A stretch of 63,751 nucleotides of DNA, counting the filler, from Pelomyxa schiedti (taxonomy: Eukaryota > Protista > Evosea), in NCBI GenBank assembly GCA_020536535.1. It is 6 parts of 6 records of this genome, joined end to end, with 100 filler letters (N's around TTAATTAATTAA, not from the genome) between each part and the next. Parts side by side here need not be neighbours in the genome. Positions count along the whole stretch, not along the records: positions 17,154 to 41,744 come from JAHLWZ010000449.1; 5 more parts are not named here. One strand, given 5' to 3'. How positions within the stretch are numbered: the first letter of the stretch is position 1; every line of letters starts with the position of its first letter. Shown here in pieces: positions 1 through 27,237 of this stretch. The notes beneath the pieces were generated by a model, which worked only from the letters and a program-made list of their open reading frames with translations, had not been told where the DNA came from and searched no databases. The translations under genes and the position numbers were made by a program.

Positions 1-2935
1 TTCTCGTTATTTCTGGATGATGGGATCGAACTTTCGTTGACAATCGATTCTTGTAGGTTGTACTTGTGGTTGCTCCATGCAGCATTGTGTGGGCCACGTC
101 GTATGAAAAGGCTGATGAGAGCATAAGCACTGTTTCGCAGAGCCTCGTGGACTCACTGTCAAAAAACACTCACGACATCGTGAGCGGTATAATATCAGAG
201 GTGGAAACTTTCTTGGCGTCTGAGGTTGCCATCCGTACTTTTTTTTTTCCCCATCCTTTTTCTTTGCTTTTGGGTTGTGCTTACAATAGAATTTATTAGG
301 TGGAGTGGCTCAAATACCGCGATATTGATATGAATTCGTACTCTGAGTGGGTAAATGTCCTCAGGCCGCGATACACCCACTTTGCTACCAAGATATTGGG
401 GTGTGCAGACTTTGGTACATATATGAAGTCTAACTTCCATTTGCTTGCAGGAATGGAGCGCTTTCACTAAGGTCTCCAAACTTGACAATGATATGTTACC
501 CATACAACACCAGCATGACAACGGTGCGCTTGTGGTTTTTCCTCCCATTTCCGTCTCACCAATTGCTCTTGCTTTTTCACAGCCCGTTTGTGCGCGCAAG
601 ACACACCCAACTGACAGTCTCAACTTCTATGCTGTTGATCCTTACACCAATGTGGAAGGTGCTCTCGTTTCGCCACCTTCCACTGCCGTCTATTCTTCAT
701 ATGGAAGGCTCTATGCNNNNNNNNNNNNNNNNNNNNNNNNNNNNNNNNNNNNNNNNNNNNNNNNNNNNNNNNNNNNNNNNNNNNNNNNNNNNNNNNNNNN
801 NNNNNNNNNNNNNNNNGCAAGACACACCCAACTGACAGTCTCAACTTCTATGCTGTTGATCCTTACACCAATGTGGAAGGTGCTCTCGTTTCGCCACCTT
901 CCACTGCCGTCTATTCTTCATATGGAAGGCTCTATGCCGACGATGTTTACGCCAGCATGATTGCGGGAAAAATGAACTGGGGAAAGGTTCTTCACTTATT
1001 CGCACCTTTCTTTTTATTCTCACTCATACTTTCAGATTGTAACTCCACAGAAACCGCGGGTTACCATCGCATGTTATAACCCATGTATGCATATGAAATT
1101 CCTACAAACAATTTTGAATGAACACAGATATGAGTGCCAGTGGGAAACTCCTTGGGGTAATCCAGCGGTCTTATTCCGTGAGAGGGCTGTCTGACAGTTT
1201 ACGTGAAGTACGCATCTTCCCATGATTGTAATTTACATGTGACTCGTAAACAGATTGCGGCAGGAAAGAATGTAATTTACGTTACCACACAAGATGGCTT
1301 CCTACTTGGTACATCCAATGGAAGTGTTGTCACTGTTGATGAAAGTAGGTGAGCACAATAGCTCTTTATACTTACGATCCCTTAGATAGCCGTGATCAAC
1401 CGCTTCGGGCTAATTCAAGTGACAACCCAGTTGTTGCTGCAATTGCACGCCAAATAGATTTGCAAGGTGGATGCGGAAACGCCTCAACGGAATTGAACAA
1501 GATCAGATTGGACGTGAATGGCAGCACCTATACGATTGCCATTTCTCGTGTGTTAAACGATTCGTCAATATCTTTTTTTTTTTCGTCTGCAACTCACATC
1601 AACACGAAGATATTCCGGCAGGCCAACGCGTGTGGTGCGGCTTCTCAGCCATTCCAAGCTCTGAGATGACGAAAACCATTGAGGAGGGAAACCGAGTGAG
1701 CATCATTGTATTTGTATGCAGTATCGTCGTCAGCATTGCATTGGCTTTGGTGTTGGCCGTTATGTTGGTCTCCCCATTGAGGCACCTCACAAAAGGTTCT
1801 TTGTCACGCCCCAGTCCACTCTCAGCTCATGCTCTATCAGACATGCAAAACCTTTCGAAACTGAGGTTCAAGCCCGTCGGTAAGACAGTGTCCGTGTTCA
1901 CGGAACTGCATTCGATGCTGAGGGACTACATGGCAATGAAACAAGGAATCCACGCCTTCTCGAGGTGTGTTTCTGTACTTCCTTGATCCTTTTTTTCTGA
2001 ATCCTCATCCCTGCCTTTACAGATATGTGTCAGCCGGTGTTGTGAGACAATTGCTTGATGGGAATGACAAGATGTCATCACTCTATCTCGAGAGGCACAA
2101 CGTAACGGTGCGATTCTATCCCTCTTTTGTACTTTGTGTTCCTGTCATTACTCAACGACATACAGGTTGTATTCATGGATATTGTTGGATTCACCAGCCT
2201 GTGTGAGGTGCGTTTCTCCCCCTTAATTCTGGCAGATACTGACCAAACGATCACACACAGAAATTGACACCGAGCACACTTGTGACACTGATGAGTGTGT
2301 TCATGCAGAGGATGTGCCAGGTTCTCATCGCCGAGGGTGCCACTGTTGACAAGTTCATTGGTGTAAGTACTTTCATGCCCTGGCTGGCCGTTTAATCTCA
2401 CACAACACACAGGATTGCATCATGTCATTCTGGAACCATCCGCAGGCTTGCGAAGATCACACATTCAGGGCCGTCCAAGCTGTCATCAAGTGTTTTGAGG
2501 AATTGAAGAAGATGAACGCTGAAAACCAAATCCACGTGCGTTTCCCACAAAAAAAAAACCACAAAAAACACCCCTGAACACAAACAATAGGGTCTCCCGG
2601 AACTGCAATTCCGCGCCGGAGTGAACACAGGAAGAGTTCTTGTTGGTAACTTCGGATCCCCTGAGAGGTTTGATTACACCGTCCTTGGCGACGCTGTCAA
2701 CGTTGCCGGTGTGCTTCTTTCTCACCAACAATAACATATACTTTAAACCATACATCGCATTGACGCACTGACAGCGAGACTGGAGCAGCTGAACCGCGAG
2801 CTCGGAACCAAGCTCCTCGTATCAGAGAGCGTGCAGAGGGCCGTTGTGGGCAGGGTCCCATTGGAACCCAAGGGTGAAGTCACAATCAGGGGCAGGGAGG
2901 CCAAGCTGGAGGTGTTTGAAGTAACAATACCTTGA
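1..2935 (+). CDS. Membrane-bound class III adenylate cyclase (TM - Cache-like extracellular domain - TM - HAMP-like - cyclase), copy 1, 5' end outside window, multi-exon
   Basis: Spliced motifs [67 protein letters not shown]; TM segment [26 protein letters not shown] followed by HAMP-like [15 protein letters not shown]; GT-AG introns; stop at 2933-2935. Confidence 0.9.
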
Positions 2936-3263
2936 GGGAGTAGGCACATGTGTGCCTACAGACAGAGGAGTAAAGAGTATCATTAAGCATGTAAATAAAA
3001 AAAAAATTCAACATCGATGACTTTCCCCCAGTCCAGATAGCCCGGGGTCGCCAGGTTTTCAGACAACCCCGAAAAGGGATTTCGACGTATTGAGTCCCTG
3101 AATAATCACGAAAGACAAAGGCGTTTTCCGCGCATTCGACTCTAAGATCATCAACTTTACGTAGCGTTGAAGCCCAACGAAAAGAGAGATACGTTCAACC
3201 TAAAACCCAGCACCTAAACCACAAAAAAACAAACAGCACACAAGCAAAGCAAGTAATAACTAA

Positions 3264-6200
3264 ATGCCAAACAACAAAGTTGAGCCCAGCAATGGTCCTG
3301 TCTACGGGGATAACAGCGCCGAAGAGGAGGGTGAAGTTGAATATGACACTGAGCAACCGGCCCAACCACCACGCACTGAATCCACAGCGACCACCACAAC
3401 GACCACCAACAGCAGCCAGTGTATGACCGTGATGAAGATACCCGACAGCGTCTTCGCCGCGCAGATGGTCGACGAGTACAGGCAGGAGCTGGTCGAGGAC
3501 TTGGCAAGCATGAAACAGGCAAAGGCAATCACCAAGAAGGGTTCCAAAAAGAGCCGGGGAACCTTGTTGGGTGCTTATGACAAGTTGTGCCCAGCGCGCA
3601 TCACGGTGCCTTTTTCGTTGATTCTGATGATAGCTTCCGTATGCGTGACCGTTTGATTTCGTTTTATCAACTGATCAAACCGTTCCTACTTCCACATAGG
3701 TGATATTTGTAGTGGTACCGTGTAGTATCGTGTGGGCTACATCATACCAGAAGGCACAGTCGAGTGTTGGCACTGTATCTAATAGTTTGGTGGAGTCTCT
3801 CTCGAAAAATGTCCACGATATTGTTGCTGGAATGATTTCCGAAGTCGACGTGTTTCTATCTGCCGAGGTTCATAGTACCCAGTTATTGGGTTCCACTTAC
3901 GGTATTCAAAAAGATTGAGTGGCTAAAATACAGAGAAATTGACATGAACTCATATCCTCAATGGGAAGCCATTCTAAGGCCAAGATATGCTCACCTGGCC
4001 CAATCGTCATTGGCGTATAAGACCATTACCTAGATTTCTTTGTTTGATACCTTTTTAGGGGTGGCGCAATTTACCTGCGGTCTCCAAATGTCACTTTGGT
4101 TTGCTACACTTATAATATCACCTATGTAGTCTTCTTTCCTTTTTTTTGTATCCTCCTTTCTCTGACACCATATAAAAAGCCTGTCTGTGCTCGGAAAAAA
4201 AACGCCTCTGACGCACTCAATTTCTATTATGTTGATCCATTCACAAATGAGGAAGGGGGATTAGTATATGGAGCACTTTCAACCGTTAAGTACAACTCAT
4301 ATGGAAAGTTATATGCCGATGACGTCTGGAATAGCATGGTGGCTGGAAAGCCAGACTGGGGAAAGGTACGGAAAGGAATTTTTTGTTTTTGTTTTTGTTG
4401 TTAATGCTGTACTAGGTGGTTACAGCACTAATGCCTGCAGTTGCAATGGCTTCTTATTACCCATGTTCGGCACCCTATTTTTTTACCCACAGTTAAACCC
4501 AAGTGCAGATATGAGCCCAAGTGGGACTCTTTTGGGGGTGGTCCAGCGGTCTTATTCTGTGAGAGGGCTGTCTGACAGTTTACGTGAAGTGCGTATTCCC
4601 AGTTGTTAATTATTCTTTTCCAAGTCGTGAACAGATTGCCTCCGGCAAGAATGTGATTTACGTTACCACACAAGACGGATTCCTCCTTGGAACATCCAAC
4701 GGAAGTGTTGTCACTGTCGATTCATGTATGAGTGCCTACTATGTCTCATGAACTTACTCCACTGTAACAGCCGGTTACGATCAACCGGTACGTGCCAATT
4801 CAAGTGACAACCCAGTTGTTGCTGCAATTGCGCGCCAAATAGATTTCCAAGGTGGATGCGGAAACGCCTCAACTGAGATGAAAAATATTCGAATCGACGT
4901 GAATGGCAGCACCTATACGATTGCCATTGCTCGTGTGTTTACCTTCCCAATTTATTTCTAAATACCGCTCACTCACTACGGACAGATATTCCAGCAGGAC
5001 AACGAATATGGTGCGGCTTCTCAGCCATTCCAAGCTCTGAGATGATGAAAACCATTGAGGATGGAACTAGAGATAGCATAATTGTGTTCGTGTGCAGTAT
5101 CGTAATCAGCATTGCATTGGCGTTGGTTTTGGCAATCCTTTTAGTGTCACCATTGAGGCACCTCACAAAAGGTTCTTTGTCACCCACTCCACTCCACTCT
5201 CAGCTCATGCTCTGTCAGACATGCAAAACCTTTCGAAACTGAGGTTCAAGCCCGTCGGTAAGACAGTGTCCGTGTTCACGGAACTGCATTCGATGCTGAG
5301 GGACTACATGGCAATGAAACAAGGAATCCACGCCTTCTCGAGGTGAATTTTGTACTTATGAACCTTCCTTCTCCTAACTTCCCCAACTCGATGTACTCAG
5401 GTATGTGTCAGCCGGCGTTGTGAGACAATTGCTTGATGGGAATGACAAGATGTCATCACTCTATCTCGAGAGGCACAACGTGACGGTGCGAACAACCTTT
5501 TGTCTTTTGTCTCAAAAACCAATTACGCACACCCAGGTTGTATTCATGGATATTGTTGGATTCACCAGCCTGTGTGAGGTGAGTTTCTCCTCCGTCGTTC
5601 TGAATGCTACTGACCAAGCGATCACACACAGAAATTGGCACCGAGCACACTTGTGACACTGATGAGCGTGTTCATGCAGAGGATGTGCCAGGTTCTCATC
5701 GCTGAGGGTGCCACTGTTGACAAGTTCATTGGTGTAAGTAATTTTATGCTCCGTGGCTGGCCGGTCAATCTCACAACACACACACAGGATTGCATCATGT
5801 CATTCTGGAACCACCCGCACCCCTGTGAAGACCACGCCTTCAGGGCCGTTCAAGCTGTCATCAAGTGCTTTGAAGAACTGGACAAAATGAACCAAGAAAA
5901 TGTCCAAAAGGTTAGTTTGCATCCTATTATGAATCAAATAGCCAAACTCACAACAAAAGGGTCTCCCGGAACTGCATTTTCGAGCCGGAGTGAACACAGG
6001 AAGAGTTCTTGTTGGTAACTTCGGATCCCCTGAGAGATTTGATTACACCGTCCTTGGTGATCCAGTCAACGTTGCCGGTGTGTTTTTATTTCTATGGTTC
6101 CCTAAGACCCTCTTTCATTTCTCTTCTTCTATTCATATAAGAAGCACTCACACACATTTTCATCACCAAATTTGCTTACGTACCGTCACTTCTTTCCGTT

Positions 6201-20802: not shown

Positions 20803-20955
20803 TTATTAGGTCAAAGGAATTTGGCCCTCAGGAAACACAAAATCTTTGTTCTTCCTCGAGATCTTGCTCCTCTCCACAGTTAAGTAAGTAAATAAGCGAG
20901 TGTGTGTGTGTGTTGTGGTTGTGGTTAACACCCACCCACCACGCGTGTCACACAG

Positions 20956-21910
20956 GAGTGCGGACACAGAGTGTGCAGGGGTTGTATGGTGTCACTGTGC
21001 ACCAGGACGTTCCTGCTGCGCGGCTCCTCCTCCTCCTCCTCCTCCTCGGCGTTGCATGGCGACGACTCCTCTGTCGACGTTGAGTGTGGTGTGTGTAGCC
21101 GCAAGACCAGTGTTGACATCGGGGATGTGCTGTATGATCACGATTTGGACAGGAAGCAACAGGAGCTATACGGTGGGACAGGTGCCGTTTTTTTTTTCTT
21201 TGGGTTCATTAACTCACATTCAAGCAGGATCGGTGTGCTCTTTGCATGGGGGGATGTCACTTGTGAAGTACTGTGTGAATGACAAGAAGCTTGTATGCTC
21301 GAGGTGTGTCTTGGAGTCTCACCAAAGGCACAACTTGACTGAAATTACCTCACAACACCGCGTTGCGGAGGCTGAAGTGTCCTCCCTGCTGAAGGCGATT
21401 CAAAGAGAAAGGGAATCATTGGAGCATTCTGCTTCTTATGTTGAGGACTCGATCGACATTCTCACAACAGTATGTGATCCCCTGTTCCGCCACAACTCTC
21501 ACACCCAACAACAGAGACAGCAGATTATCGCACGGGAAATTAAAACAACATTTGAGAGACTGATGAAGGAACTCCAGAGAAAGAAGGACAAGCTGCTATC
21601 CAGCATGATGAATATCTTTTCAAAAAAAAAGGGAGCTCTCAATCTGCACTTGAAATGCACTCGTTCCACCATCAACCAACTCACAGAATTTGAATGGAAG
21701 AGTTTCATTGCAAGCCAAAGTGCACTGACTGAAGAGAACAGTGGAATTGAGCAGGCCACGTCACTCCTTTCCTTGACCCAAAATCCCATTATCCGAAATT
21801 GGAACCTTGCCGATGTAAGTAGAGCTCTGTTTCTGCCAACTAACGGATCTGATACACTGATGGAGGAGGGGCACTGTATGGTGGATTCGCGGCAATGGCA
21901 ACAGGCATGA
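20956..21910 (+). CDS. TRIM/RBCC-like protein (partial RING, B-box, coiled coil), multi-exon; first exon not identified
   Basis: After acceptor cacag: ECGHRVCRGC...ECGVCS (RING C-terminal part); CSLHGGMSLVKYCVNDKKLVCSRCVLESHQRH (B-box 2); IAREIKTTFERLMKELQRKKDKLL (coiled coil). Confidence 0.7.
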
Positions 21911-22224
21911 TGTACATGAGCAAGAAGGGCAAAATGAAGACACAACCACCAAAGAAATACTAGTTACAACAACAAATTACAATGGCAAACAGCCGGTCTG
22001 TTACGATTTTTGATTTCCAAGCCGTCACTAATCCACGAAAGAGTTACACCGGTGTGCAAATGGGCGGAGAATGGCCAGAGAATTTGAGTGGGAAAAATGA
22101 AGTTTTTTTGAGTTAACCAGGGCTTTTTTTTTTTGAGCTGCACCGAAGTTTTTCGTTTGAGGCCACCCATTTTTTTAACGGCAACAAATCTTTTTTTTTC
22201 TTTTTCATTTTTTGAAGGAAATCT

Positions 22225-23400
22225 ATGCATGGGTGGGAGGCTGCCAAGAGAAGCACCCTGTTGAGGTGGGCACAGGAGGATGCCTGCCGAGTTGCCCGCG
22301 AGGAAGGAGTTGCAGTCAGTACAGTGTATCGGTATCGCCACAGACCAGCCCTGGCTACTTGGAGATCAAAAATGCCAGAACTCGTTGCTGCACTGTTGAA
22401 GGCCTTTATTTGCAAGCACAGCACATCAACCAGGGCAGAACAAATTAAGTTCTTGCTGCAAACCACGGGGCTGCCATTTGCGTATGCACTTGATGATCGG
22501 TTTTGTTCCCTTTAACTGTGTTAGTCCTTATGACATAAGCTGGCCAACTAAGAGGCTTGGCTTTAAGTTGCACTACACAACAAAAAAAGAAATTGGCACC
22601 AGGAATGAGGTTAGTCCCCCCTCTACTCGGTTCTCTAGATTAGAATATATATAAGGGAGAGAGAGTTCTCTGGTGGCAGCACACAATAACAGATGTCCCT
22701 CGAGGGTTGCCTTTCTTGCTTTGATGTTATTGTGTTAACCACACTTTAGTATTCGTCATATTTCTGTTGACTGCCTCATTGATTTGGATGAGATGGGATG
22801 CACCTTGGCTTCCACAAGAAGGAGAAGTGGACATCCCTTCCTGGACACTCTGTTCGAATCTCAATGGTTTGCTTTTAGTAAAAATTTCCCATCATTTACT
22901 GTGTGCAGCCATCTTCTTCCAAGCACTTCAACCTTCTGATGGCTGCTGATACAACTGTTGGTGCTGTTGCACAGTGGGTTTTCCCTGGGACCATGGATGT
23001 ACATGTATTCTATTCCTGGATGGCTGCAATACTGCTTCCTGCCATTCAAGGCAGAAAACGAATCCTGATGATGGACAACCATCCAGCTCATCTGGATCCC
23101 TCAGTTTTCCACCTAGTAGAAAGCCATGGGCACTTACTACTACGACGGTTCACTTCCACTTTTCCAACTTGCATACTAATTGCTCCCAGACCTGCAACCT
23201 CCCCTGACTTTGCCTGGATTGAGTCTTGCTTTTCTTACTTGAAGACAAGACTCCGGGAAAAGGCTGATGAAATCACTGAGGATAATTTGATGGACTACAT
23301 TTATATGGAATCGAACAACATCACTGGTGCTCTCGCGGCGCACTGTCATTACTATGTCCCGGGAATTCAATACACACCCTACTCATACGCCAACATTTGA
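22225..23400 (+). CDS. DD34E transposase (Tc1/IS630 type) with spliceosomal introns; start approximate
   Basis: HTH CRVAREEGVAVSTVYRY; D1 LIDLDEMG; D2 ILMMDNHPAH; E in PATSPDFAWIES (cf. PxxSPDLNPIE); D-E spacing is 34 after removing the 42-nt intron 23148-23189. Confidence 0.88.
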
Positions 23401-25002
23401 TAGGGTACCGCGGAAAAAAAAATGATTTTTTTGGGATTTGAACTCGGTACTCTTTTTTGTCAAACATTTTCTTTCCGCCTGCACTAAGAGAATAACGCAG
23501 TATTTCAGGCCTTTCACCCTGTGTAAAAAAAAGAAAAAAACCAAACTTGTTTTGGTTACAAATTCTGGTGGGTTATGGATATGAATTTTGAAGTCAGTAC
23601 GAATTATGTGGACCATACCCGGGAGGTGGAAAAGGAGGCGGAGGGATAAAAGGATGTGGGACATAAGGTGGGGCTTGTGTATCTTGTTGCACCACAGTTG
23701 TGTTAGTCTCAGGTAGTGGGAGGGTTGAGTCAGATGACTGTTGTATCTCCTTGTCACCTGGTTGTTTGTGAGATGCGGAAATGAATGTTCTGATATACCA
23801 ATCTTATACTTCAGAATTAGGGATTCGATTTTGGGTCCAAACTCTTTCATACGCCTTAAATCTGCACACTCCTCATATGTAGAGAGTACTTCATACATCA
23901 AAAGTGCTATAACTTCATTCCCCTGAGGGATGCCACATGCTGGCATTAATACCGAAGAAACAAAAGCTGTGTCTTGATTAAAAAGCAAAAAAAAGAAGAA
24001 AAAAAGCAAGCCTTTAAACTCCTGAAGAGTGTTTCTGATCCTAGGTTTTTTTGGGGAACACTCAGAAGCAGCATCATCTTCAGGGTCAGGGGGAATACTC
24101 AAAGGAAACCCTGTTCAGTATTAATTAATCAACGCAGGTAATGAATGCTGCAGGACAACCTAGAACCGAACTTTGTGAAGTAGGAGGGACCCCTGTTGCA
24201 CAAGATGTTGAAGTTGTATGTATGTCAGAGGTACAAGACGCTGCTGATGCAATAAATGTTGCATTGGTTGCCACAGCACAAGATGCTGCGCCTACAACTT
24301 TGTTAGTTCTTGTGCATCATTAATTTCCTACGAAGCACCTTGTGAACACAGTGCTTGCCCTACAGCAGGCTTGGTTGCAAACAGGTGTCCCAAGTGCTTT
24401 GTCAAGGCATCAGTCTGTGATGCTGGTCTTTGGGTTTCCAGCTTTTTTTCAGTACTGGCAATAGTCTCTTTCGTTTGTTGCTCATAGGAGAGTGTAGCCC
24501 TCTTAGAGTAATCCCAGTACGAGTGAGACTTGTCTTTCGTTTCTTTTGCGCATTGACAAAGACACCTCCTGCACAAACATCAATAGAAAGTTGATTTACA
24601 TGAAACTCACGGGCAGGTCGAGCAAAAAGGCAAGCCACATTCAATGCAGGTTCCACCTGACTGCCGGACTTGATTTCGACAGTGACATACACAGAGTGGA
24701 GCACCGTCTAGGCACGCTTTTAAGAAAATTAGAATTCAAGTAATGAGTGATGGAGAACACCATTGCAAGGGTTTCCCTTAAGGTGTCCAGTGCAGATACA
24801 GTGTACTCGGACAATACTAGTCTAGACTACACAAGTTATGAATTCCAGTGTTTGAAAAAGAAACACAGACTGGTTTTTTGGTTTTCTGCCTGGGACACTC
24901 GTGTCGACAATTATAACAGAGGTAGATCTCCTCTGGTGGCGCCTGGTCATCTGAACAGGGTGAAATGGGAAGTGAAGAGCCCCTGGGTGATTCGTCTGAC
25001 AT
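23383..25002 (-). CDS. Transposon passenger gene: Cys-rich N-terminal domain, helical middle region, Pro-rich C-terminus; multi-exon, 3' end approximate
   Basis: Manual splicing gives ...LCYNCRHECP...VHCICTGHLKGNPCNACLDGAPLCVCHC...TCIECGLPFCSTCPRCLCQC...; GT-AG introns; lies wholly inside the TIRs. Confidence 0.65.
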
Positions 25003-25210
25003 GGTGATAGTCTTGTGGAGGGTTTTGCTTTTCTTTGTAATAATAAGAATAAAATCCAACCGACACCCCTTGAAAAAAACACAACGCCCTCCAGCAAAAT
25101 CTTGCCTGTGGGGCCAAAAAAAAAAGCATGTGGCAAAACCAAAAAAACCGGTTCAGGTTCAGTGAAACGATCACTGTTTTCTCTTCACATTTGCACACCG
25201 GTGTAACGCC

Positions 25211-27237
25211 ATGACCACAAGTACGGCTACTGACGGCAATTGTTTGACCATTCGTCCCATAAGTGGTGCGGTGGTGTCGGTGGGCGCAGGGGGTGTGTTG
25301 TCTGTGGACGCGTGGGAGTCCGCGTGTCGGTTGGCCGACGAATCGGTGCGGGACATGGGCCGACTGTGGCCGTTGGTGGAATCCTTCAAGGCCAATTTCG
25401 GCGCCGGTGTTACTGAGGGTACTGTTATTGAACTGCTTAACGGCTGGTCCAGTACCTTGGTCTCACTGACACTCGGGTGCACAATGGCCACGGATTCGCT
25501 GGTGGAAGCTATTTCCTCAAGGTGCCACAGGATACGAAACCTGGCGTTCCTGTGCTCTACAGGAGAGCCGGAGTGCAAGGACAAGCTCACTGATGAGTCG
25601 CTCAGGAGAATCGCAGAGGGATTCCCGGACCTGAACTCACTGGAACTCTCCTGCGCCGCTGAAATTACCGACGATGGGATATCAGCGCTATCTAGGAGAG
25701 TGACTGCGCTGAATACAATCAGATTCCCGCACTCGCTTAACATTGGTGACGCTGGAATCTCTGCACTCTCCAGAACGTGTCCGCGGTTGATACATTTTGA
25801 TGCAGAGTGGACTGAGAATCTCACTGATTCCGGGGCAACTCAACTGGCCCGGAACTGCCCCCGGCTTCAACATATCAACATAGCTTCTACTGAAAACCTC
25901 ACAGATCTAACCCTTGAAGCCGTTGGTACTAACTGCCACGATCTCCAGGTTCTTGATGTGTGCCATAGCTATGGTATCACTGACGCCGGCCTGAGAGTTT
26001 TAGTCTCAGGCTGCCCAAAGATAAGCAAGCTGGATATCGGCTACTCAGTAATAACTGATGTTGGACTAGAGTATATTGGAAACGGGCTGCATCACCTCAG
26101 CTCGCTCAATATTGTAGACAACACCTCGGTCACTGACGATGGCCTGGCCCACATATCCCGAGGGTGCCCTCTGCTAATGACCCTCAACATGACGAGGGTG
26201 TCAACAGTGACAGAGAGAGGCATTCTCCAAATCGCGCGGAACTGCCATCAGATGGAATTCTTGTGGAATGATGAGGTTCTGCTATCAGATGAAGTTATGA
26301 GCCAGGTTGCCAATTTTTGCCCCGGACTCAAGTCCATTAGCTTCCGTAGTGCTACAGGAATCACTGATGAGGGTATAATACAGCTAGCAAAGAGTTGTCC
26401 CAGGCTCGAGGAGTTAGACCTATATTCGAATACCAGTATAACCGACAGATCCGTATTGCCTTTGGCTGAAAACTGCCCGGAATTACAGGCTCTCTGTCTC
26501 CATAAGTGCCGAAACTTGACTGATGAAGCACTCTCCCATCTGGGTCGGTATTGCCACAAGCTCAAATCACTGTACTTCAAATCGCCCAACATCAGCGATG
26601 ATGGAATAAAAAGGCTTGCAGAAGGGTGCCCCTGCATTGAATACTTAACCATGGCATCGCAGAAACTGACAGATGAAGCCTTGATTCACCTAGGCCGGCA
26701 CTGCCACAATCTGAGCACGATTACCATCAAAGGGAACACGAACATGACTGATGCCGGAGTGCTACAAATTTCTCAGGAATGTCCTTTGAGATGGGGACTC
26801 TATGTTCACAAGTATGAACTTATAATAACCACTTTTTAGCAAATTGTAACATTCCTTCAGCCCCAACGTGGATGCCACTAAACTCTTTCTTGTCAACCTC
26901 CCGAACTACCTTACTGAGTCAAACCTCAACAATCTGTTCAGTACACAGGTGGGAAACTATTTAAAAAAAATTAATTTAAATTTGAAAAAAACAAAAAAAA
27001 AAAAAACAAAAAGGCAAGACAAAGCCGGCGTGACTAATCCTACTTGTAGGAAGCCCGGGTCCTGGGAATAAGCTTTGAAAATCGAGGATTTGGGTATGTA
27101 AAATTCGGTACAGTAGAGGAACTTCGAGCCGCGCAACAAGAAGCTGGCTTAAAGTGTTCAGACCTCGATGGCCGCACTGTAGCCACACAATACCCCAAAT
27201 GTACTTCTCCCAAATCACTTCATGACTTGGTGTAACT
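25211..27237 (+). CDS. Cys-containing leucine-rich-repeat protein (FBXL/AMN1-type) with a spliced C-terminal RRM; 3' end approximate
   Basis: 542 aa ORF of ITDxGLxxLxxxCPxL repeats; donor gtatga at ~26812 joins to KLFLVNLP (RNP2), then RGFGYVKF (RNP1) and LDGRTV. Confidence 0.82.

Follow-up and report, generated by a model that had tools for sequence, protein, structure and literature searches.

The stretch of DNA analysed here, hereafter the window, comprises 63,751 nucleotides from the amoebozoan Pelomyxa schiedti (assembly GCA_020536535.1). Within the part taken from JAHLWZ010000449.1 lies a transposon with two spliced genes, one for a transposase and one for a cysteine-rich protein that we refer to as the passenger. 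An earlier note, made from the sequence alone, had drawn attention to this element. The element proper occupies positions 22047–25203 (3157 bp) and is flanked on either side by TA; both copies of this target-site duplication, at 22045–22046 on the left and 25204–25205 on the right, can be read directly from the sequence. Its terminal inverted repeats (TIRs) match perfectly over 16 nt, with the left arm at 22047–22062 on the plus strand, where imperfect likeness continues to about 22071, and the right arm at 25188–25203 on the minus strand. The left junction consists of gagt TA followed by CACCGGTGTGCAAATG (22045–22062), and the right junction of CATTTGCACACCGGTG followed by TA acgcc (25188–25205). 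A repeat search returned the two arms as its top inverted pair, 29 nt long, 90% complementary (26/29) and 3107 nt apart. Counted with the TA, the 18-nt end motif is present at 41 places in the 52.4-Mb assembly (17 forward, 24 reverse), compared with zero occurrences of a reversed control, and the window ends are therefore not a product of chance. TA flanks were also found in two related copies, C4240 and C4070, and in the sister elements L055, L056 and L057. The two genes of the window element are convergent. Their stop codons lie around 195 bp apart, and their starts are located 180 and 201 nt inside their own ends.

The plus-strand gene encodes the transposase. Splice sites and reading-frame phases yield a model of six exons totalling 945 nt, separated by introns of 58, 46, 44, 42 and 42 nt, all of the GT-AG type. 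Exon 1 (22225–22481) covers a putative N-terminal helix-turn-helix (HTH) region and was delimited by phases, comparison with C4240 (L002) and weak HTH matches; its Pfam matches to HTH_23 and HTH_7 remain below threshold (E 0.008), and the window copy is devoid of a GGGRPS linker found in C4240. Exon 2 (22540–22609) is defined by AG/GT boundaries and phase continuity, and the 50-nt exon 3 (22656–22705) is predicted because phase continuity requires an exon between AG/GT boundaries at this place. The first catalytic aspartate (LDEMG) falls in exon 4 (22750–22866), read in the frame given by an extra G after 22834. The second (MMDNHPAH) falls in exon 5 (22909–23147), which is supported by the Pfam domain DDE_3 and by identity to sister lineages, and the catalytic glutamate (FAWIES) lies with the stop codon in exon 6 (23190–23400), again within DDE_3. 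The match of the open reading frame (ORF) 22903–23400 to DDE_3 (PF13358) has an E-value of 6.5e-12 and scores 46 bits against a cut-off of 28.6. With the predicted 42-nt GT-AG intron at 23148–23189 removed, 34 residues separate the aspartate of MMDNHPAH from the glutamate of FAWIES. The TA duplication, the TIRs, the DDE_3 domain and the D-34-E spacing place the element in the Tc1-like DD34E group of the IS630/Tc1/mariner (ITm) superfamily. When compared with the sequences of the Protein Data Bank (PDB), the transposase ORF had no match at E ≤ 1.

The passenger gene is encoded on the minus strand, with its ATG at 25002 and a stop codon ending at 23594. It comprises eight exons that sum to 1092 nt, exactly 364 codons including an in-frame TGA, and thus a protein of 363 residues. 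Exon 1 (24871–25002) contains the start codon and a CYNCRH motif; the MSDE..CYNCRH start is common to the homologues on C1578 and C893. Exon 2 (24761–24821) carries a CxCTGHLxxNPC motif that recurs in the gene models P0002 and P0009 and in the C1578 ORF. Exon 3 (24611–24716) encodes a CxC...CxxCx4CxxC module, in which the window copy reads CLDG where its relatives have CxxC (alignment A3). Exon 4 (24339–24568), with CxCxC...SHxxWDY and a subsequent helical stretch, is the best conserved (alignment A1; 21 genomic matches). According to the exon model, exon 5 (24160–24291) is a linker rich in serine, threonine and alanine, and exon 6 (24012–24110) combines an acidic stretch with a basic patch (PKKPRIR) resembling a nuclear localisation signal (NLS). 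Exon 7 (23799–23966) corresponds to a conserved C-terminal helical domain (alignment A4; domain fold of P0002), and exon 8 (23594–23757), again from the exon model, to a proline-rich tail with a PPxY motif (PPYV) and the stop codon. PPxY is also found in the C1578 and C572a homologues and is absent from the C633 and C753 models. The seven introns measure 41–49 nt; six are GT-AG and one is GC-AG, the GC donor following 24012 and being replaced by GT in the C1578 homologue. In P. schiedti as a whole, genes contain 7.43 introns on average, of which 98.4% are GT-AG and 1.59% GC-AG (PMC8887013).

To the extent that the databases reveal it, the passenger is an orphan. The window exons were searched singly, and the spliced proteins considered are the database gene models P0001–P0010. 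Neither the exon ORFs of the passenger nor five spliced models (P0002, P0004, P0005, P0006, P0009) matched any Pfam domain, and specifically no Myb/SANT-like domain was detected in them. Protein homology searches with the exon-4 alignment, with residues 20–190 of P0002 and with the full alignment A2 retrieved only 'hypothetical proteins' of P. schiedti. When 1.84 billion representatives were searched exhaustively with a HMMER profile, there were nine matches, seven of which are gene models of the P. schiedti genome; the remaining two are long proteins aligned only in a low-complexity helical part. Feature searches of the ESM Atlas produced no usable match for the passenger. A B-box zinc finger of the TRIM/BBX type was considered and rejected: there was no Pfam match at E ≤ 1, and the best PDB profile match, B-box 1 of TRIM28, had an E-value of 0.25, a likeness confined to the CxxCx4CxxC spacing. 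AlphaFold2 did not give a usable model for residues 1–345 of P0002 (predicted local distance difference test, pLDDT, of 45). The C-terminal domain of P0002, which is homologous to exon 7, was predicted as a three-helix bundle with a pLDDT of 77 and a predicted template modelling score of 0.66, and a Foldseek comparison of this domain with the PDB yielded no match better than E 1.7. With its distinctive and conserved cysteine pattern, the orphan protein may define a new zinc-binding domain.

Up to this point our analysis agrees with the earlier note, which had described a 3157-bp element with 16-bp perfect TIRs and a TA duplication, a spliced DD34E transposase on the plus strand, and a minus-strand gene that converges on it, each gene starting just inside its own TIR. 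Sequence reading, the repeat search, the DDE_3 match, the 34-residue spacing and the two exon models bear out all of these points. The absence of any RuvC, kinase or tyrosine-recombinase motif from the passenger, also claimed there, is matched by the absence of such Pfam domains from its exons and from the gene models.

Homologues of the passenger recur in other Tc1-like lineages of the same genome. Six-frame searches with the passenger exons detected homologues, 37–42% identical to the window protein, on C1578, C753 (two), C572 (two or three), C893 and C912, and a profile of exon 4, which matched 21 genomic places, added C968, C511, C633, C714 and C1695. These contigs are largely the same as those that carry diverged transposase homologues (46–61% identity). 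When the loci were searched by tblastn, the Cys-rich exons were located 1.0–1.6 kb past the 3' end of the transposase and on the opposite strand each time. The arrangement was found in 10/10 loci that have a complete transposase on a long enough contig (C449, C1578, C753a, C753b, C572a, C572b, C511, C633, C714 and C968). At least five diverged Tc1-like lineages of P. schiedti besides that of the window element have a passenger homologue, always placed and oriented alike.

In several of these sister elements, the two genes are enclosed by recognisable ends. L055 (C968) measures 3177 bp and has 214-nt TIRs, TA flanks and both genes inside. L056 (C511) and L057 (C633) are two insertions of one 3089-bp element, TA-flanked and with 277-nt TIRs; the surrounding sequence differs between the two sites, and both genes are present at each. 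In L051 (C753b), TA-flanked TIRs of at least 121 nt that start TACACCCGTG.. and reach the contig end likewise surround both genes, and in L049 (C1578) the right end, ..CCGGTG TA, follows just past the start of the Cys-rich gene. The two-gene elements are 3.0–3.5 kb long, around 1.6 kb above a one-gene Tc1. The C714 element (L058:3077–6077) itself lies between the arms of an additional 63-nt inverted repeat, the outer flanks of which are identical (gttgtttc), and is apparently nested inside another inverted-repeat element; the right end of the C714 element begins with TGCAG, not TACAG.

Invariant cysteines and a common domain order emerge from the alignments A1 (exon 4), A3 (Cys module) and A4 (C-terminal domain), with C, C, C, W and Q as the invariant residues of A1. 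An intron directly follows CxxCx4CxxC at the same place in every lineage. The cysteine pattern and domain order are kept between lineages whose non-coding DNA no longer aligns. Between lineages, transposase exon 5 is 53–72% identical, whereas passenger exon 4 is only 20–43% identical, and the passenger therefore evolves about twice as fast as the transposase. For C633 and C714, two copies of one lineage (synonymous divergence, dS, of 0.1–0.3), the pooled passenger exons gave a ratio of non-synonymous to synonymous differences per site (pN/pS) of 0.32 (33.5/539 versus 30.5/157 sites; Fisher p 5e-6), and the transposase exons a ratio of 0.09. Purifying selection thus acts on the passenger, at about one third of the strength with which it acts on the transposase. 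At least six lineages carry the passenger at the same place within their inverted repeats, which, together with this selection, indicates that it has been integral to the element since before these lineages split. We conclude that the passenger is an integral, selected gene of the element and not the cargo of one copy.

At the DNA level, the passenger of the window element is single-copy. In a search of the assembly DNA, the 1634-bp segment 23414–25047 matched itself only. The segment, which holds the whole passenger gene, is missing from C4070 (L003), a copy 95–99% identical to the window element, where the transposase stop region is joined directly to the last 158 bp of the right end; comparison with L003 and a read-contig joint place the missing segment at 23413–25046. 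The breakpoints share a 3-nt GAA microhomology, and an independent joint (23412 to 25047) occurs in a contig of run X3, one of three DNA runs (X1–X3). The segment has no ends or duplication of its own, and the microhomology is typical of deletion. Because every sister lineage has the passenger gene, C4070 is most simply an internal-deletion derivative that has lost it. Tc1-like elements commonly produce internal-deletion derivatives. Two further copies, C2554 (L004) and C4940 (L005), are without 171 nt that correspond to window positions ~22457–22627, from the end of exon 1 to the start of intron 2, and are further internal-deletion derivatives.

Around 40 ends in the genome carry the terminal motif of the window element. 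Most belong to a family of 2.3–2.85 kb whose likeness to it is confined to about 30 terminal nt (TACACCGGTGTGCAAATG..), with members on C912 (L054:114-2388), C757 (L061:528-3380), C879 (L062:537-2891, 2882-5207), C666, C187, C800 and C733. The family falls into two subgroups with 66–77% identity along most of their length, and neither a transposase or passenger nor any other coding capacity could be recognised in it. It is presumably non-autonomous and mobilised in trans. Together with the deletion copy, this non-coding family is consistent with trans-complementation. On C879, two of its copies abut with overlapping ends. Both C4240 (L002:60-120) and C4070 (L003:225-252) sit in sequence containing the word AACTCGAGTT(T/A), which is present twice upstream of C4240; the shared word may belong to another repeat family or reflect a preferred target context.

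The earlier note had regarded its reading, a new compound ITm family, as open to refutation by copies that lack the passenger, or by a passenger that turns out to be a single-copy host gene fragment free of purifying selection. Each of these was found in part. C4070 does lack the gene, but homologous genes are kept in at least five other lineages; the passenger DNA is single-copy, but its protein homologues reside in elements, with a dN/dS of about 0.3. The proposed check on co-occurrence had a similarly divided outcome, as the passenger DNA was found once but a protein homologue accompanies the transposase in all ten complete loci. Comparison of dN/dS between copies, another check it had suggested, could be made for one pair of copies (C633/C714) and separates the passenger (~0.3) from the transposase (~0.09). 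On the strength of the homologous convergent genes inside the TIRs of at least five other lineages, the proposal of a new compound family stands. Two further checks came out negative: Logan contigs of the source reads contain no empty-site allele, and splicing gained no confirmation from RNA, since the contigs of the one run searched include none on the element.

The window copy itself differs from the reads and from its relatives in several respects. The assembly lacks a G after 22834 that is present in contigs of all three DNA runs; with this G exon 4 is in frame (..SGHALPGHSVRISM), and without it the exon is frameshifted. Contigs of the three runs also differ from the window at 22885 (T>A), 22962 (T>C) and 23059 (C>T), and those of runs X1 and X3 have one base fewer at 25116. 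These differences reflect either assembly or polishing error or the collapse of near-identical copies. In exon 1, a stretch of 18 nt in the window copy takes the place of 36 nt in the 93%-identical C4240 (L002:429-466), which encode a Gly/Arg/Pro linker, ..PDYKPGHGGGRPS... Both variants are present in the reads, as indicated by loose ends at 22347 and 22366 in run X3. Window positions 22347–22366 partly resemble the reverse complement of the C4240 version, and the comparison suggests a small inversion-deletion. The change is in frame but removes the basic linker, and the transposase of the window copy may therefore be impaired. The same may be true of the window copy as a whole, considering the rearranged transposase linker, the loss of one passenger cysteine and the GC donor.

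Taken together, we interpret the window element as a complete copy of an intron-rich, two-gene Tc1-like (IS630/Tc1/mariner, DD34E) cut-and-paste transposon whose second gene encodes an accessory factor of the element, a reading to which we assign a probability of about 0.72. The passenger unites around 16–18 conserved cysteines and histidines in a module of ~110 residues with an NLS-like patch, a three-helix bundle and a proline-rich tail that often contains PPxY. Transcription presumably proceeds inward, for each gene from its own end. By analogy with other two-gene transposons, the passenger would be a nuclear, zinc-binding accessory factor supplied in trans. At the element ends, it could contribute to the assembly or the regulation of the transposition complex; alternatively, it could link the element with machinery of the host. 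Several models can be envisaged. The passenger might bind the ends and assist nuclear import, as the Myb-like protein of Harbinger elements does; it might be an insertion helper of unknown chemistry, as MURB of MuDR, which has the same convergent, TIR-proximal layout; or it might act as a derepressor that binds subterminal sequences, as TnpA of CACTA elements. We favour a passenger that takes part in the transposition complex or controls it directly.

The main rival to such a role is one directed at the host. An equally integral element gene could counter silencing, tune expression or copy number, or recruit WW-domain ubiquitin ligases via PPxY. The fast evolution of the passenger relative to the transposase would be expected of a protein in conflict with its host, and PPxY or proline-rich tails occur in several lineages. 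Moreover, Tc1 transposases normally bind their own ends through HTH domains, and a DNA-binding helper is not obviously needed. We nevertheless consider a host-directed role unlikely relative to one in transposition; PPxY is missing from the C633 and C753 models, and the present evidence does not separate a host role from that of a cofactor. Fast evolution as well as the solo homologues on C893 and C912 fit either function. A bolder version of the favoured reading is that the Tc1-like elements of Pelomyxa form an obligate two-component system, the second part of which is a previously undescribed multi-zinc protein, devoid of detectable relatives and needed for transposition or for escape from host control; this we put forward tentatively, as a possibility less likely than not.

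Readings in which the passenger is not a working part of the element fare far worse. The single-copy passenger DNA and the direct junction in C4070 would suit a host fragment captured by one copy (transduplication), or a separate insertion into a one-gene Tc1. Such an origin is very improbable, as it is contradicted by homologues that are placed and oriented alike within the TIRs of at least five further lineages, by their shared intron positions, their common MSDE..CYNCRH start and purifying selection, and by a segment that shows only deletion-type microhomology and neither ends nor a duplication of its own. Least probable of all is a host family of Cys-rich genes beside which Tc1-like elements merely insert. 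Solo homologues such as the annotated 350-residue protein on C893 and that on C912 point in this direction, but matching, TA-flanked inverted repeats enclose both genes in five elements, the 3089-bp element carries both into different flanks on C511 and C633, and the gene accompanies each of the ten complete transposases at the same distance and in the same orientation. Finally, the second gene might be a decaying relic devoid of current function, to which one could attribute the lost cysteine (CLDG), the GC donor and the lack of RNA contigs in the window copy, as well as the poor AlphaFold confidence for the N-terminal part of the sister-lineage homologue P0002. All eight exons are open, though, with phases that sum to exactly 364 codons; the pN/pS of 0.32 between lineage copies and a cysteine pattern and domain order that outlast alignable non-coding DNA likewise speak for a gene in use, and decay is hence a highly improbable explanation.

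Several observations weigh against the interpretation of the passenger as an accessory factor of the element. Pfam, the PDB, Foldseek and the Atlas provide no homologue of known function, so the proposed role draws on architecture and analogy. A Mantel test of transposase against passenger distances was significant but driven by near-identical pairs, and passenger identities of 20–43% are too low to resolve a deep co-phylogeny of both genes. The assembly derives from single-cell data and is fragmented, which makes all copy counts lower bounds. Homologues without a transposase exist on C893 and C912, and the protein might also, or instead, serve the host. The C893 homologue (L053:3300-4810; C893:20300-21810) corresponds to the annotated protein P0009, whose N-terminal extension is long and rich in Gln. 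Neither a transposase nor recognisable TIRs were found near this homologue, which may represent a copy that was immobilised or domesticated. The database model P0009 appears to mis-splice the CxCxC exon. Finally, a single-cell RNA run, available as assembled contigs only, contains no contig on the window element, although the neighbouring leucine-rich-repeat (LRR) gene is represented at 100% identity in the same run. As only contigs were searched, this is a weak negative for the window copy and silent on the other lineages.

The first ATG (25211) of this LRR gene, a 542-residue ORF with LRR_4/LRR_6 repeats that resembles F-box-LRR proteins (region 25204–26839), follows 5 nt after the end of the element, which therefore lies in the 5' region of the gene. 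The matching RNA contig covers 25469–25700, and the LRR gene is thus present in the RNA contigs despite the insertion. Upstream of the element, a host ORF on the plus strand (20900–21910) encodes a B-box-like CxxC..CxxC..HxxH pattern and then a long helical region, in the manner of a TRIM-like B-box and coiled coil. It is unrelated in sequence to the Cys-rich protein of the element. A paralogous RNA contig matches 21859–21941 with 5 mismatches.

The genome papers of P. schiedti (PMC8887013) and of the related Mastigamoeba balamuthi make no mention of transposons, and the present analysis gives a first description of transposons in Pelomyxa schiedti. Within the searchable literature, the coverage of which is incomplete, we came across no account of amoebozoan Tc1-like elements with a conserved accessory gene. 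The architecture described here is real and reproducible, while its second protein is an orphan. It also demonstrates that genes of mobile elements can carry intron loads at the level of their host. Tc1 elements are the textbook one-protein transposons, and members of the Tc1/mariner group serve widely as tools for gene transfer, since their transposase suffices by itself in almost any cell. That a whole Tc1-like clade has kept a second, selected gene through deep divergence suggests an added layer in the form of a cofactor, a regulator or a module for host interaction. To our knowledge, no such layer is known for the Tc1/mariner superfamily outside ciliates.

The Pelomyxa elements share with canonical Tc1-like DD34E transposons, such as Tc1 and Tc3 of C. 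elegans, Sleeping Beauty-type elements of fish and the Entamoeba families, the TA duplication, TIRs beginning CA.., a DDE_3 core with D-34-E, a putative N-terminal HTH region and the occurrence of internally deleted or non-autonomous derivatives. Whereas the canonical elements encode only a transposase in ~1.3–2.4 kb, those of Pelomyxa reach 3.0–3.5 kb with a second, convergent multi-exon gene, and both genes are rich in introns (5 and 7).

Ciliate TBE1 and Tec elements are multi-ORF members of the IS630/Tc1/mariner superfamily (PMC7325037). They likewise place a DD34E-type transposase and further ORFs inside inverted repeats, and one TBE ORF encodes a zinc-finger protein. However, TBE/Tec elements contain three ORFs, Tec has a tyrosine recombinase and TIRs of ~700 bp, and their setting is ciliate germline elimination as opposed to an amoebozoan host. 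No sequence similarity between TBE/Tec proteins and the Pelomyxa passenger was found, and the passenger has no recombinase or kinase domain in Pfam.

An extra protein-coding gene is also a feature of some Tc1/mariner elements that carry Fanzor/TnpB (PMC3627910). Fanzor proteins differ in having a RuvC-like nuclease domain, which Pfam did not detect in the passenger, and the latter, at 363 residues, is far shorter than typical Fanzors. In its layout, the window element is reminiscent of maize MuDR, in which the two convergent genes mudrA and mudrB each start inside their own TIR and the product of the second, MURB, is confined to its lineage and has no known biochemistry. MuDR belongs to the Mutator superfamily, generates a 9-bp duplication and has no sequence relation to the Pelomyxa elements. 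PIF/Harbinger elements, finally, are two-component DDE cut-and-paste transposons that encode a small nuclear accessory protein. Their transposase is of another superfamily, the target-site duplication is 3 bp (TAA/TWA), and the accessory protein is of the SANT/Myb type, a domain that Pfam did not detect in the Pelomyxa passenger. It is this two-component system that serves as the functional analogy for the mechanism proposed here.

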